This document shows, piece after piece, positions 43,819 to 48,841 of a stretch of 64,000 nt of DNA; within the stretch, counting starts at the first letter, position 1; every line of letters begins with the position of its first letter. The position numbers and the translations under genes were made by a program. The DNA is from Leidyana gryllorum EB-2025a (lineage: Eukaryota; Protista; Apicomplexa). The notes beneath the pieces are model-generated. The model saw only the letters and a program-made list of their open reading frames with translations. It did no database searches and was not told the DNA's origin. The stretch covers positions 186,001 to 250,000 of the forward strand of contig JBLWGC010000213.1 in the NCBI GenBank assembly GCA_048772705.1, given 5' to 3'.

Positions 43819-46800
43819 ATGATGCGTCAACTTCGCTGGCTGATTTGGGGAGTATTGGTGGTGGGAGCTGCGAGACTAGAGGATCGGATAGAGGATTTCG
43901 TCCGAACTGAATTCGAGAAGGCTTTGACGGGGCGGCACGATAATGGATGGTCCGACAGTGAAGAACGGTCGTTTCACACGGCTTCAGCTGTATGGGAGCT
44001 GAGTGACAACAGCTGGACAACACTGAATGAGGGAGGTGAAGCTGAATCGCGCACGAATCTTCAAGAAGCGCGTGCCGCCGTGAGTAGGCGGCGACGACTT
44101 CAGAGTTCTACAGGCGCGGCTCTTCCTGGGGATGACGAAGGGGTCAGCGGTCGGAAGCCGCGACGTCGAGGTCGACGCAACCGAGCGAAAAAACGTCGGC
44201 ATGGCAACAAACTAGTCGGCCGAGCTTATGGGCGCTCCACCGGCGACATGAGCACTGAGGATGAGGATGGTGATGGCTTGGACGTAGGTGCTGCCCGTCC
44301 TCCCCCACACCTTCGCCGTTCGCGCACCCCCAGTCAAGCGCAACCACCCCCTCCCCCACTTCCCCCTCTGGCAACATTTACCCCCTAACATGATTGGTCA
44401 TTTAAGATGTACGCGGAACAAAGGGGCGGGTGGTGCGCGAACGGCTCTTATATCTGTTTACCTGCTTCACATGTGTAGTCAGGCGATCTATGATCTTCTC
44501 GAAGACCAATTATCACCCGAAGTCCCACCCTTGATGCAAAATATCTCTGCAGTCTGTGACACACCCTATGCACAGAGTGCCTCCAAGGCAGGCAGGTTGC
44601 CAAGCTCGCGGGTATCCGAGTCACGCAGAGTCCTGGCACAGTGTAATGCGAATGTATCTCCTACGCTACGAATCGGCGTGTCGCTGCGGTTTTTCAAGAT
44701 CGTTCAAGTAGAATTTGCGCGCGGCGAATTCGCAGTATCTGTGTGGTGAGGCCCCGCTCAGCATCTAGGATTGCCAATGACAGACCATGCGGCCAGGGTG
44801 CGAATGTTCTGGCCGGACTTGCGGCTGTTGTACAAGGGTGAGGACTACATTGATGATTGGTCTTCCAGCACTGACTATGTACCTATTGGTGTTCACGAGC
44901 CGGGTGACAACGAGATTTGGGTGGGTTTTTCTACGCCTTATGATGAATCAGCCCACCCGCGATGCAGGTTCCATACCTTGCATTGGTCAACAACATGCAA
45001 CCGGATTTGCAAGAAACTCTTAATTACTTCTTCCCCGCCAAGGTCTTCGACACACATTTCCTACGCGTACGTCCGTTCGTGTGCCCAACTTGTCAAACAA
45101 ATGTCATACATCACTACCAATAGGCTAAAGGCTATAATGTATATTGGGCACGACAAATGGTGTTGAGAGCAGTCTGCCCTCCACACGTCCTGATGTTCCC
45201 CTTTGACATGTAAGTCGTCTGATATCCTGATGGACTGTAAGTCTGGGTACCGCCTATTCCGGTAGCCAGTATTGCCCCTTCGACTTCCAATTGTGGGGAC
45301 TTAATCCCGAACGGTTCACTTATTCGTTCGTTGCGGGGGGCTATCCTCCGGTGGTAGAGTCCTCCTTCCCGTCGGAAGCAGAGGTCTGGGATGTCGAGCA
45401 GGCTGTTGTGCACCCAATGTCTGAAACCCTCAGTAAGAGTCGTGCGTTGTGCCACAAATACCACCATCGTAGCTGGCGACATTACGAATTTGAGGTATAT
45501 GATGGCAATGGCCCGGGATCCTGACTACTACGTATCTAATTTTGTCTGGCCATTGGCATTGGTCACCTTGTTTGCTTACCTATCCTTCTGGTTGCCATTC
45601 CAAATGTATGATCGAGTCACTCTCTCGGTCACTATCCTTCTTGCGGTCTTTGCTATAATGTACATAACGGCTGCCAGCCGACCCCCCCTCGGGCAAGACA
45701 CATGGATTGACGTCTATCAAGCTGGATGCATTGCTTTATCTCTCGTACCGGCCGTAGAAACCATCATCATTTCCCGTCTCCGGGAGCAATTACACAGAAG
45801 GTGAGCGAGCTGTCACTAAGCGTATCTGTACCGCGAGAATCAAAATGAACCTCAGAAACCAACAACGGGAGGGGGAATGGAAACGTCTTCGCCACTCCGC
45901 CACCGACGCGCCGAACAGCGGCTCCATGACTGACGCAAGAGGGACTCCCACCAGTCCGTGTGACACTCCGATGCCATCCTCACGTCCTCTGCTGACCACC
46001 ACCGGCCCTGCCTTCAGTACCCTGCCGGCTGACATTCCGGTGCCCGAGCCGCAAGGCTTAGCCCACCACCACGAGAGCAGTGACAGCATGTTGTTCTGGC
46101 ACTTACCTGTGGTTACCCCCACTGTGGCTGTGGCTCCGACGTCAATATTGTATGGTTCAACGGACGAAGCTCATGTGACGGCCGAACTTGAAGCCACATT
46201 CGGTCCCCGTGGACTGTGGCCTCAAGTCCGGCCCGTGTACGAGTACGGACGGGCGCTGTCTTGCACCTCCCTGCGCAGAGAAGGAAGTTTTTCCTCTAAT
46301 TCTTCGCTAAGATCCACCAGTGAGGAGCCGGCTCCCCTTGACATTCGCAAGATTTCCGTGTATCTGGTGAGTAGTCAACAACTTACAGCCCTGTGGTCAC
46401 AGCCAGGTGGCCATTAATCTCCTTTGTTCAGAATCAAGACATACACGGGTCATCGCCTCCATCTGTGCCTGGAACTGCGCAACGGCGTGTGCGCTTTGGT
46501 GCTCGGAGTGAAGACTCTCTGTCTCGAATATCTTCAGACACGAGAAAGTCCGAGGAGGATAGTATAGCCGCCCCCCGGCGGATTGGGAACCCTTTCAAAC
46601 GTCTGCGCACAATTAAAGATAGTAAGCGTTTGAGACGAGCTCAACAAGCGGGCAAGGTGAGATCGTAGAGACGATAACTTGACCACGGCTTATTTCAGCA
46701 TCATTTCGCACGTTCTCTTGGCTTGATGATGCATCCTGAACGGCCTGTGTTGCACTCTTCAACACTAGACGGTCACTCCCCGCTTGGACGTCGATGTGAG

Positions 46801-47950
46801 TGCCTCTGCAGCAGCCTGCACACTTCACATCACCCAGTTCGTTCTCAAACCACTGGCACAACTTCGCGATCTCCTCAAGATCGCACGACATCATCTCGCT
46901 CTCGACAGCACTATGAAAGTAACTCCTCCAGCTGTCGATCTAACGTGAGTTTGTGGAGATCATTAAGAGTATGAGACTTGCTCGCTGCAGGATCTGACCC
47001 CGCCATTCACACCCAAGGGGAGCTTCTCGCTCCCAACGCCTGAAAATCGCTCTCTGCTGTCTTACAGTCTGAATCGGTGGGTTTCGAATGGGATCCTGCT
47101 GAATATGAAGTCACAGAGAGCTTCCGCGACGTGACTTTGAAGCCACTTCTGAAAGGAGTGGACTACTAAATGAAGTCGGTGTCTTCTCTATACCTAAACC
47201 CCAAGCCGCTGACCCAACTGCACTGCCTAACTTCATTGATCGCATGTTCCAAGTAGGGTTTGTAACATCCTGTGACACTGATGACGCTCGATATGCAGAT
47301 TGTATATCCCGGTTTCATGTTAACCTTCTTCATTGAGAGGTTCTTCTTTATGGAGGTGAGTGGTGTGTGTGCGCGCGCGGAGACACGCACTTGATGGTGA
47401 CAGATCCACAATCCTTTGCGGCTATTTGGGGTGGACCGCATATCAGTGACGATCCTGGCTGTTGCAGTAATCAGCTGCCTGTACCTACTGTGGATCTTTG
47501 CCGTCGCGTCTCATGTAAGTGGCGTTTGGTTGGATGAAGATTGAGAGTGGTTTTATTCAGGTTGCGGTGGCCTTTCCCTCATCCCAAACTCATCTGGGAT
47601 ACAAGATAGCGGACGCCCTGAATCTACGACTTGATCGCGCAGTGCAGCGCCAGCATCAGGCGATGTCGTCGTCGCCGTTGCCGACCGAAATGCGTTCTGA
47701 GTACATTGCACACGGTTCTGGAAGCGCATTCAACGAGTTCAAGCTGCCAGCTGGGGGTGATTTCGCTGGCAGCACACTGGAGACCATGGGGAGCCCCGTT
47801 GTATCTGGGGGGCCTTTACTTACACTTCACAGCTCCGATGAGCATGCACAACAACATCATGAGGATCCCTTGTTTTGGGGTGATTTGTCAACGAACAAAG
47901 ACGGGGGAAATTCTCAACCAGGCGTCGCTGGGGTGAAAGCACGCTTGTAA
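43819..47950 (+). CDS. Pentameric ligand-gated ion channel (Cys-loop receptor) subunit
   Basis: Spliced product: signal peptide; IYDLLEDQLSPEVPP; IGVSLRFFKIVQV...WVRMFWPDLRL; IWVP; CPPHVLMFPFDIQYC; R-DPDYY-M1 (NFVWP...SFWL); M2 DRVTLSVTILLA; M3 WIDVY; M4 IDRMFQIVYP. Confidence 0.88.
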
Positions 47951-47995: not shown

Positions 47996-48841
47996 ATGGT
48001 AGCTCAAATGCCTGATGCCCGTCGACGTGACCCACGTTCGACGGGGCGTATGTTGTCGAAGATCCTTCGACACACAGCAGTGAAGGACAGAATACCGATG
48101 CGAACTGATGGCTATGTCCGGCTGACTGATCTTCTGACAATGGCAAAGAGACCGCCAGGCTCCTGTGTGGAAGACATCGTGCATATCGTCAAAACTGATG
48201 AGAAATTCCGATTCGGGCTTGGACTGCGTGTGGACCCTCCCAGATTGGATGCCTCACACGAGGTGCAAGTCAATCCGTTCACCGTGGAAGCATTTGAAGC
48301 CATGAACCCGACTGCGCAACGGGCGGTGCACGAGCGACTCTATGTCCGTGCCCACCAAGGCTTTTCCATCAAGACGGTCTCGGAGGAGCGTGTGTACGAA
48401 AAAATTCAGAACTCCGCCGAGCTTCCCGTCTGTGTTCACGGAACCAAGCGCACATTGTATCGAACTATAATGCAATCAGGACTCCAACGCATGAAAAGAA
48501 CCCATATTCACTTCGGGACTGGACTGCAAATTGATCCTACTGCACAGGGACGCATCCGCAAAGACGCAGAAGTTGCAATTTACATCGATGTCGCTCGCGC
48601 CATGAGAGACGACATTGTTTTCTGGAGAGCTCACAATGGTGTCATCCTGTCCTCCGGCAAAGATGGATGCATCACCAAAGAATATTTTGCCCGAGCCGTC
48701 GACCTCACCAACGGGAAAGACATTCCACTCGACCCCGACTATTTTGTCGATCAACCACAACTTGAAGCTGGGACGCACATCAACGTCGATCGGATCACAT
48801 CCAATGTCTCAAGCCTCTCCGACTCCAGTGGAGGCGCGTGA
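47996..48841 (+). CDS. TPT1: tRNA 2'-phosphotransferase Tpt1/KptA
   Basis: LSKILRH, DGYV, RAHQGFS, HGT, GLQRMKRTHIHF and NGVILS. Confidence 0.93.
   Translation: MVAQMPDARRRDPRSTGRMLSKILRHTAVKDRIPMRTDGYVRLTDLLTMAKRPPGSCVEDIVHIVKTDEKFRFGLGLRVDPPRLDASHEVQVNPFTVEAFEAMNPTAQRAVHERLYVRAHQGFSIKTVSEERVYEKIQNSAELPVCVHGTKRTLYRTIMQSGLQRMKRTHIHFGTGLQIDPTAQGRIRKDAEVAIYIDVARAMRDDIVFWRAHNGVILSSGKDGCITKEYFARAVDLTNGKDIPLDPDYFVDQPQLEAGTHINVDRITSNVSSLSDSSGGA

Follow-up and report, generated by a model that had tools for sequence, protein, structure and literature searches.

A gene for a Cys-loop subunit of the pLGIC superfamily (pentameric ligand-gated ion channels), split by many short introns, is very probably present in the genome of the gregarine Leidyana gryllorum EB-2025a. 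It lies on the forward strand at 43819-47950 of the window, by which is meant the whole stretch of 64,000 nucleotides analysed in this study (positions 186,001 to 250,000 of contig JBLWGC010000213.1, assembly GCA_048772705.1); coordinates refer to this window unless another contig is named. The gene consists of 15 exons that together read without interruption through about 1,097 codons, starting with the ATG at 43819 and ending with the stop codon. All 14 introns have GT-AG borders, 13 of them being 40-65 nt long and intron 1 (44284-44482) 199 nt, and each would, if retained, lead to a premature stop or a frame shift.

The Cys-loop itself is divided between two exons. Exon 5 (45124..45209) carries strand beta6 and the first half of the loop, from the cysteine codon TGC at 45175-77 through F-P-F-D to a partial codon for Ile, while exon 6 (45266..45432) supplies the rest, Q-Y-Cys with the second TGC at 45273-75, followed by the loop-B Trp (45294-96), strands beta8-beta9 and a short loop C. 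Between them stands intron 5 (45210..45265), a phase 2 intron of 56 nt that reads GTAAGT...TAG. Its removal joins AT|C to Ile and yields C-PPHVLMFPFDIQY-C, in which exactly 13 residues separate the cysteines and F-P-F-D stands at its canonical position; its retention would bring in a TAA stop one codon on. A disulfide between the two cysteines would be expected from what is known of the family.

An earlier reading of this DNA, made from its letters alone (the sequence-only reading), had proposed that splicing of 45210-45265 gives a C-x13-C loop with FPFD, and translation confirmed both the coordinates and the peptide. The other landmarks that it had listed, namely WxDxRL, the IWVP of loop A, the pre-M1 Arg, the M1 Pro, the 9' Leu, M3 and M4, were all found where it had put them. 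Its remark that the track of open reading frames (ORFs) never shows the loop intact holds for the window gene, whose Cys-loop is spanned by no single listed ORF, but not for two paralogs elsewhere in the genome, in which the whole loop lies in one exon.

Membership in the superfamily

Pfam, homology and PDB searches were run exon by exon, the joined protein being used only for translation, alignment and the tree. Exon 7 (45473..45800; 108 aa) spans strand beta10, the pre-M1 Arg (45514-16), M1 with its Pro (45550-52), M2 (45610-45678, with Asp -1' at 45610-12, Arg 0' and Leu 9' at 45640-42) and M3 (about 45703-45777). By itself it scored 33.1 bits against PF02932 (Neur_chan_memb; cut-off 28.1) and 36.8 bits against the same family in a scan of the organism's own genome. 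Exon 5, which encodes 28 aa, matched PF02931 (Neur_chan_LBD) by itself at positions 113-136, the Cys-loop region, with an E-value of 0.039; no Pfam match was obtained when exon 1 and the other four of the five extracellular-domain exons (2-6) were scanned singly. Exon 2 proved homologous, by local BLASTP, to the start of the extracellular domain in Cephaloidophora and in metagenome relatives.

Among PDB sequences, exon 7 matched the beta2 and delta subunits of the nicotinic acetylcholine receptor (nAChR), 5-HT3A and ELIC at E-values of about 2e-6. In these alignments its Asp stands opposite the Glu -1' of the cationic receptors and its Arg opposite 0'; the pre-M1 Arg and the M1 Pro likewise fall opposite their equivalents. 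The last two residues, together with the Pro and Asp of the loop (the 'Pro-loop'), are all present in the model and are invariant in family alignments of 8 and 80 sequences. M4, which follows the cytoplasmic loop, falls outside the Pfam match; the pre-M4 I-D-R and a hydrophobic helix are common to the window gene, its ortholog and its paralogs, and an I-D-R...Y-P-G motif around M4 is kept in relatives and paralogs alike.

The closest relative came from a HMMER search with exon 7 as query against 1.84 billion representative sequences, which returned 555 matches at E<=1e-3. The best of these, P0001 (EukProt EP01054), is a protein of 1,048 aa from Gregarina sp. Poly1 that is 85% identical to exon 7. 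Gregarina sp. Poly1 is a gregarine of the cockroach Polyphaga aegyptiaca known from RNA libraries (Salomaki et al., 2021; PMC8051059). The Cys-loop of P0001 is contiguous (C-PPYVSMFPFDIQY-C), and the protein passed both Pfam families, with 35.3 bits for PF02931 (cut-off 26) and 34.2 bits for PF02932 (cut-off 28.1). Other labelled matches to exon 7 were from Rhytidocystis pertsovi (Transcriptome Shotgun Assembly GHVQ01), Gregarina sp. Poly1 (two further proteins), Cephaloidophora cf. communis, the source of Transcriptome Shotgun Assembly GHVH01 (PMC10304595), and Porospora cf. gigantea, in which two genes are annotated as uncharacterized.

Over 311 aa covering the extracellular domain and M1-M3, the spliced model and P0001 are 71% identical in a script alignment. 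The alignment begins at the first residues of P0001, within exon 3, and is free of gaps across eight exon junctions, those at aa 284, 317, 345.7 (where the Cys-loop intron lies), 401.3, 510.7, 912, 931 and 968, which speaks for at least eight of the 14 exon joins being correct. The M3-M4 loop has diverged almost wholly from P0001, with the exception of two short blocks and the pre-M4 block; the first 40 or so residues of the exon 15 tail are again conserved. Such a combination of conserved domains and a diverged cytoplasmic loop points to a gene that is functional and subject to purifying selection.

Membership of the window gene in the superfamily is confirmed at the level of sequence, PF02932 being recognized by exon 7 and PF02931 by the ortholog as well as by exon 5. 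The claim of the sequence-only reading that introns conceal a genuine Cys-loop channel gene in the compact genome of a protist is supported by these Pfam matches and by the ortholog.

The fold was predicted with AlphaFold2 for P0001, rather than for the window protein, from the 80-sequence alignment. Residues 1-300 of the P0001 model mostly have predicted local distance difference test (pLDDT) values of 85-97, and the cytoplasmic loop is disordered. When the model was compared with the PDB by Foldseek, the muscle nAChR, the alpha4beta2 receptor, honeybee RDL, GluCl and the glycine receptor were recovered with a probability of 1.00 and E-values of about 1e-13.

A further helix is predicted after M4 (here TM5), encoded by exon 14 (47404..47514) at about 47440-47508, and it is the highest hydropathy peak of the protein (2.67). 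TM5 is present in P0001, P0002, P0005, P0006 and P0008 and appears in the P0001 model as a helix with pLDDT 64-78. Both TM5 and the tail behind it are colinear with P0001, and a second hydrophobic segment is also found in the Rhytidocystis, Cephaloidophora, Porospora and metagenome relatives. If TM5 spans the membrane, the C-terminal tail would come to lie in the cytoplasm, and such a five-helix topology would be unusual in the superfamily. By a crude hydropathy count, five segments are also seen in 22 of the 63 tree rows that belong neither to the apicomplexan clade nor to the animal group (both described below), and the extra helix may be more widespread than that clade.

Pore, binding site and proposed function

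At M2 positions -2' to 0' the window gene reads Y-D-R, so that the acidic residue at -1' and the basic residue at 0' are kept but the Gly at -2' is not. The corresponding triplet is [Y/F/N]-D-[R/K] throughout the clade of close relatives, compared with G-E-K/R in animal cationic receptors, P-A-R in anionic receptors and G-P-R in a group containing dinoflagellates. The residues of M2 that face the pore are T2', T6', L9', A13' and A20'. A conserved acidic ring at -1' is an established signature of cation channels, which makes cation selectivity the favoured and better guess for this protein. The sequence-only reading had taken the acidic -1' residue as such a signature, and this fits, the Asp aligning with the Glu -1' of 5-HT3A and nAChR.

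The 22-row Cys-loop group of the tree that includes Gymnodinium smaydae (P0019-P0046 and others) has G-P-R or G-x-R at these positions, with no acidic residue at M2 -1', and reads K/L-L-L-C in mid-M2. This dinoflagellate-containing group may represent an anion-type or otherwise distinct pore lineage.

The positions of the aromatic agonist-binding box (loops A to D) give a mixed picture. The cation-pi site of loop B, seven residues after the second Cys, is Trp in the window gene and Tyr in the ortholog, and the Trp of loop D is also kept. The aromatic residue of loop A is replaced by Val in the window gene. Likewise, the Asp of the loop-A WxPD motif has become Tyr (W-V-P-Y, 44968-44976) in the window gene and its Gregarina ortholog only, other clade members reading P-D. 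Together with a loop C that is short and has neither an aromatic pair nor vicinal Cys, this suggests that the window subunit may lack agonist binding on its principal face.

A six-frame scan of the organism's own genome with PF02931 recognized two further loci, at C109:287205-287672 (51.8 bits) and C36:33797-33976 (30.9 bits); the window gene itself was missed because its extracellular-domain exons are short. In both paralogs a single exon holds the full Cys-loop (C-DFDLSRFPFDEQV-C and C-NAFLKAFPFDQQA-C, respectively), and M1-M4 are present. The C109 paralog is orthologous to P0009 of Gregarina sp. Poly1 and the C36 paralog to P0005. The genome accordingly holds at least three Cys-loop subunit genes, each with a one-to-one transcript ortholog in Gregarina sp. 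Poly1. Loop C of the C36 paralog is rich in aromatics, making it a candidate for the principal, agonist-binding subunit. A pentamer of mixed paralogs is proposed because loop C of the window gene is without the usual aromatics while that of one paralog is rich in them; a heteromer in which the window subunit contributes the complementary face is plausible but speculative.

A working scheme for the channel can be put forward on these grounds. Owing to a putative signal peptide, the ligand-binding domain would face the cell exterior or a lumen, and five subunits, possibly a mix of the three paralogs, would surround a pore lined by M2. Binding of an agonist at a subunit interface would move the interface between the Cys-loop and the M2-M3 loop and so open the gate at the 9' Leu, and the ring of Asp at -1' (Y-D-R) would favour the passage of cations. 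The long M3-M4 loop and the tail, brought back to the cytoplasm by the fifth helix, would offer sites of regulation. The ideas that such a channel senses small molecules of the host, or could serve as a drug target, are speculation.

Of the alternatives to this scheme, the one that survives best accepts a genuine pLGIC and holds that it is no neurotransmitter-type receptor or sensor of host ligands. The protein would instead be gated by protons, divalent ions or a metabolite, reside in an internal membrane, or act only as a partner subunit, structural or complementary. For gating of this kind there are precedents in GLIC and DeCLIC, which respond to pH or calcium. The short loop C, the Val in loop A and the Tyr in WxPD point the same way, the three paralogs suggest heteromers, and protist pLGICs have no known biological role (Jaiteh, Taly & Henin, 2016; PMC4795631). 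The retained loop-B aromatic (Trp here and Tyr in the ortholog), the loop-D Trp, the signal peptide and an overall architecture like that of surface receptors speak in the other direction. We grant this alternative a considerable likelihood, while thinking it rather more probable that it is wrong.

A fuller scenario can also be drawn. Gregarines and marosporidians would have kept an ancestral myzozoan set of Cys-loop cation subunits (three in Gregarina), with a fifth helix and a cytoplasmic tail. These subunits would form heteromers at the trophozoite surface that are gated by a small amine of the host gut and control attachment or gliding, and the set would have been lost in the apicomplexans that infect vertebrates. 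This scenario seems unlikely to be right.

Phylogeny and alternative accounts of the locus

For the phylogenetic analysis 157 sequences were assembled, comprising the spliced model and 156 from the exon 7 search and cluster look-ups. A C-x13-C loop with [F/Y]-P-x-D is present in 101 of them (100 of 156 without the window model). All of the labelled non-animal carriers are apicomplexan or dinoflagellate, and many carriers are unlabelled metagenome or assembly predictions. The tree was built from the 84 sequences with most of the extracellular domain and M1-M3, leaving out fragments and near-identical cluster members, using IQ-TREE under LG+C20 with a quick search and support from the Shimodaira-Hasegawa-like approximate likelihood ratio test (SH-aLRT) only.

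The window gene and P0001 were paired with a support of 100, and the pair fell within a clade of nine rows (SH-aLRT 95) that further comprises Rhytidocystis, two genes each of Porospora and Cephaloidophora, and two metagenome proteins. This clade is nested in a group of 72 rows that includes the dinoflagellate Gymnodinium smaydae. A branch with a support of 98 parts the 72-row group from one of 12 rows that holds the labelled animal sequences (UNC-49 of C. brenneri, a Gordionus nAChR, a sea-urchin protein and a jellyfish protein), and the free tree did not place the window gene within the animal cationic clade. Identities are 71-85% to the Gregarina transcript, 30-35% to the Rhytidocystis, Cephaloidophora and Porospora proteins and about 20% to animal receptors. 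The labelled members of the clade are all early-branching apicomplexans, and the clade itself seems undescribed; the labelled relatives of the window gene come from parasites of invertebrates (gregarines and Rhytidocystis), not from human pathogens.

Several points weigh against the reading of the locus as an intron-split gene for a Cys-loop receptor subunit of ancestral protist origin. No RNA runs were listed for the source organism, so that splicing is deduced from the sequence and the ortholog mRNA. Exon 1 and the 199-nt intron 1 are without comparative support, P0001 being 5'-truncated there; only the open frame, the splice sites and a convincing start of signal-peptide type speak for them. 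The membership of the extracellular domain rests on the ortholog and the alignment, as only exon 5 matches Pfam alone, and M4 is of low confidence in the P0001 model (pLDDT 43-48). The short loop C without aromatics and the Tyr in place of the WxPD Asp are departures of the binding site. Finally, in an approximately unbiased (AU) test, a tree with the Gregarina pair and the 12 rows of the animal group as one clade was 26.7 log-likelihood units worse and was not rejected (p 0.064); therefore the tree fixes the deep position of the clade only loosely.

The same exon-wise Pfam failures across most of the extracellular domain, and the lack of RNA data for the source organism, might be taken as signs of a decaying or unexpressed pseudogene whose exon structure is fortuitous. 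Against this, the 15 exons stay in one open frame through about 1,097 codons, every splice site being a canonical GT-AG one, and the residues that are invariant in the family (both Cys, the Pro and Asp of the loop, the pre-M1 Arg and the M1 Pro) are all kept. As is typical of purifying selection, free divergence is confined to the cytoplasmic loop, and identity to a transcribed ortholog is 71-85% in the functional domains. A pseudogene is therefore a very improbable account of the locus.

Contamination by an animal host, or recent transfer from one, is hardly credible. In its favour, animals are the best-known source of the superfamily, mollusc sequences like nAChR alpha7/alpha9 make up the ESM Atlas clusters nearest by features, and the AU test did not formally reject a grouping of the Gregarina pair with the animal rows. 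However, composition is uniform across the 64-kb window that holds the gene, the gene's introns of 40-65 nt are within the short range reported for gregarine genomes (PMC9250747), the gene's best relative is the Gregarina transcript, with animal receptors far behind in identity, the 95-supported clade has only apicomplexan labelled members and is separated from the labelled animal rows by the 98-supported branch, and three paralogs have one-to-one orthologs in a second gregarine. Host contamination, which the sequence-only reading had considered unlikely, is excluded by the tree, the identity to gregarine sequences, the paralogs, the composition and the introns.

Comparison with known systems

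The premise of the sequence-only reading that the Cys-loop typifies animals is outdated. Bona fide Cys-loop receptors, both cationic and anionic, have been reported in four protist species (Jaiteh, Taly & Henin, 2016; PMC4795631). The same study listed Alveolata among the protist groups with pLGICs and concluded that the clades predate animals; its text names no apicomplexan or gregarine, the only alveolates named being ciliates with Cys-less sequences. No such channels were found in the apicomplexan genomes available to Tasneem et al. (2004). Ligand-gated, pentameric or Cys-loop channels are never mentioned in a review from 2022 on the ion channels of protozoan parasites, nor are such channels mentioned in the Porospora genome paper (PMC9250747). 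Literature searches on Cys-loop receptors and pLGICs in apicomplexans, gregarines, alveolates and parasites returned no paper describing this family. A word-index protein search with residues 1-330 of P0001 recovered P0001 only, and one with a profile of eight clade members recovered its first sequence and scattered animal receptors; both are uninformative about other apicomplexans.

The protist receptors of PMC4795631, termed 'Pro-loop receptors', resemble the window gene in belonging to unicellular eukaryotes and in having a 13-residue Cys-loop and a cationic-type pore mouth with an acidic -1'. They differ from the clade of the window gene, which has Y/F-D-R in place of G-E-K/R, a very long M3-M4 loop, and an extra helix and tail. 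With the animal nAChR and 5-HT3A the window gene shares the F-P-F-D of the Cys-loop, the loop-B Trp, the pre-M1 Arg, the M1 Pro, the 9' Leu and the acidic -1'. Animal cationic receptors were also the best PDB sequence matches for M1-M3, and nAChR was among the best fold matches of the ortholog. Unlike those receptors, however, the window gene stands outside the animal group in the free tree at about 20% identity, lacks the vicinal Cys pair, the loop-C aromatics and the Gly at -2', and has Ala at 20', an N-terminal extension, an intracellular loop of about 400 aa and a fifth helix.

The nearest likeness outside Gregarina is to KVP18_000677 and KVP18_004476 of Porospora cf. gigantea and to the transcripts of Cephaloidophora cf. 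communis and Rhytidocystis pertsovi, which share the clade (support 95), the Cys-loop, the Asp at -1' and two hydrophobic segments after the loop. These proteins are only 25-35% identical to the window gene, keep the WxPD Asp and are annotated only as hypothetical or uncharacterized. The prokaryotic GLIC and ELIC have the same two-domain fold and pore architecture, ELIC being among the top PDB sequence matches for M1-M3, but have neither the two cysteines nor the long cytoplasmic loop, nor an architecture of signal peptide and extension.

The kind of channel is thus already known, and the window gene is a new and well-supported member of it. Its interest lies in placing a ligand-gated channel family in the Apicomplexa, a phylum for which none is discussed in the literature searched, and in a clearly delimited clade whose transcribed members come from at least four genera and which supports the view that the Cys-loop and a cationic pore signature predate animals. 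A set of three genes in a 15-Mb genome may also be a tractable system for the role of such receptors in a cell without synapses. The practical value as a drug target is low unless relatives occur in pathogens of people or livestock.

Remaining exons, neighbouring gene and paralogous loci

Exon 1 (43819..44283) is the least supported exon. Its frame is open from the ATG at 43819 to a GTAGGT donor at 44284, and it encodes a signal-peptide-like N-terminus (the first 23 or so residues) and a basic, low-complexity extension. A strongly basic stretch with runs of Arg and Lys follows the signal-peptide-like start, and translation begun instead from an ATG at 44391 would leave the signal peptide out. 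Exon 2 (44483..44745) encodes the N-terminal helix and strand beta1 of the extracellular domain and joins exon 3 through TG|G, a Trp codon. WPDLRL (44810-44827) lies in exon 3 (44797..44920), which ends at the I-W of loop A, so that IW|VP straddles intron 3; exon 4 (44968..45066) continues with V-P-Y of loop A and strands beta4-beta5.

The M3-M4 cytoplasmic loop is encoded by exons 8-12 (45856-46366, 46432-46656, 46699-46944, 46991-47076 and 47117-47252). It comprises about 400 aa over 45856..47252, is rich in Ser, Arg and Pro, and ends in the pre-M4 motif F-I-D-R-M-F-Q. The M4 helix (IVYPGFMLTFFIERFFF) in exon 13 (47299..47355) is colinear with P0001. Downstream of the TM5 exon, exon 15 (47561..47950) encodes a C-terminal tail of about 129 aa that closes with a TAA-type stop codon at 47948-50. 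Some 45 nt past this stop begins a single-exon ORF of 281 aa (47996-48841), which may encode a tRNA 2'-phosphotransferase of the Tpt1/KptA type.

The two paralogs differ in their layout. In the C36 paralog (L003; G000:C36:32297-35476), made up of ORFs 1450-1956 and 1957-2202, an intron falls between M1 and M2. The C109 paralog (L002; G000:C109:285705-289172), made up of ORF 826-2175 and downstream exons, carries its loop within a single exon and is extended at the N-terminus by about 230 aa. Both it and its ortholog P0009 carry a Trp in place of the Leu at the 9' gate position of M2.

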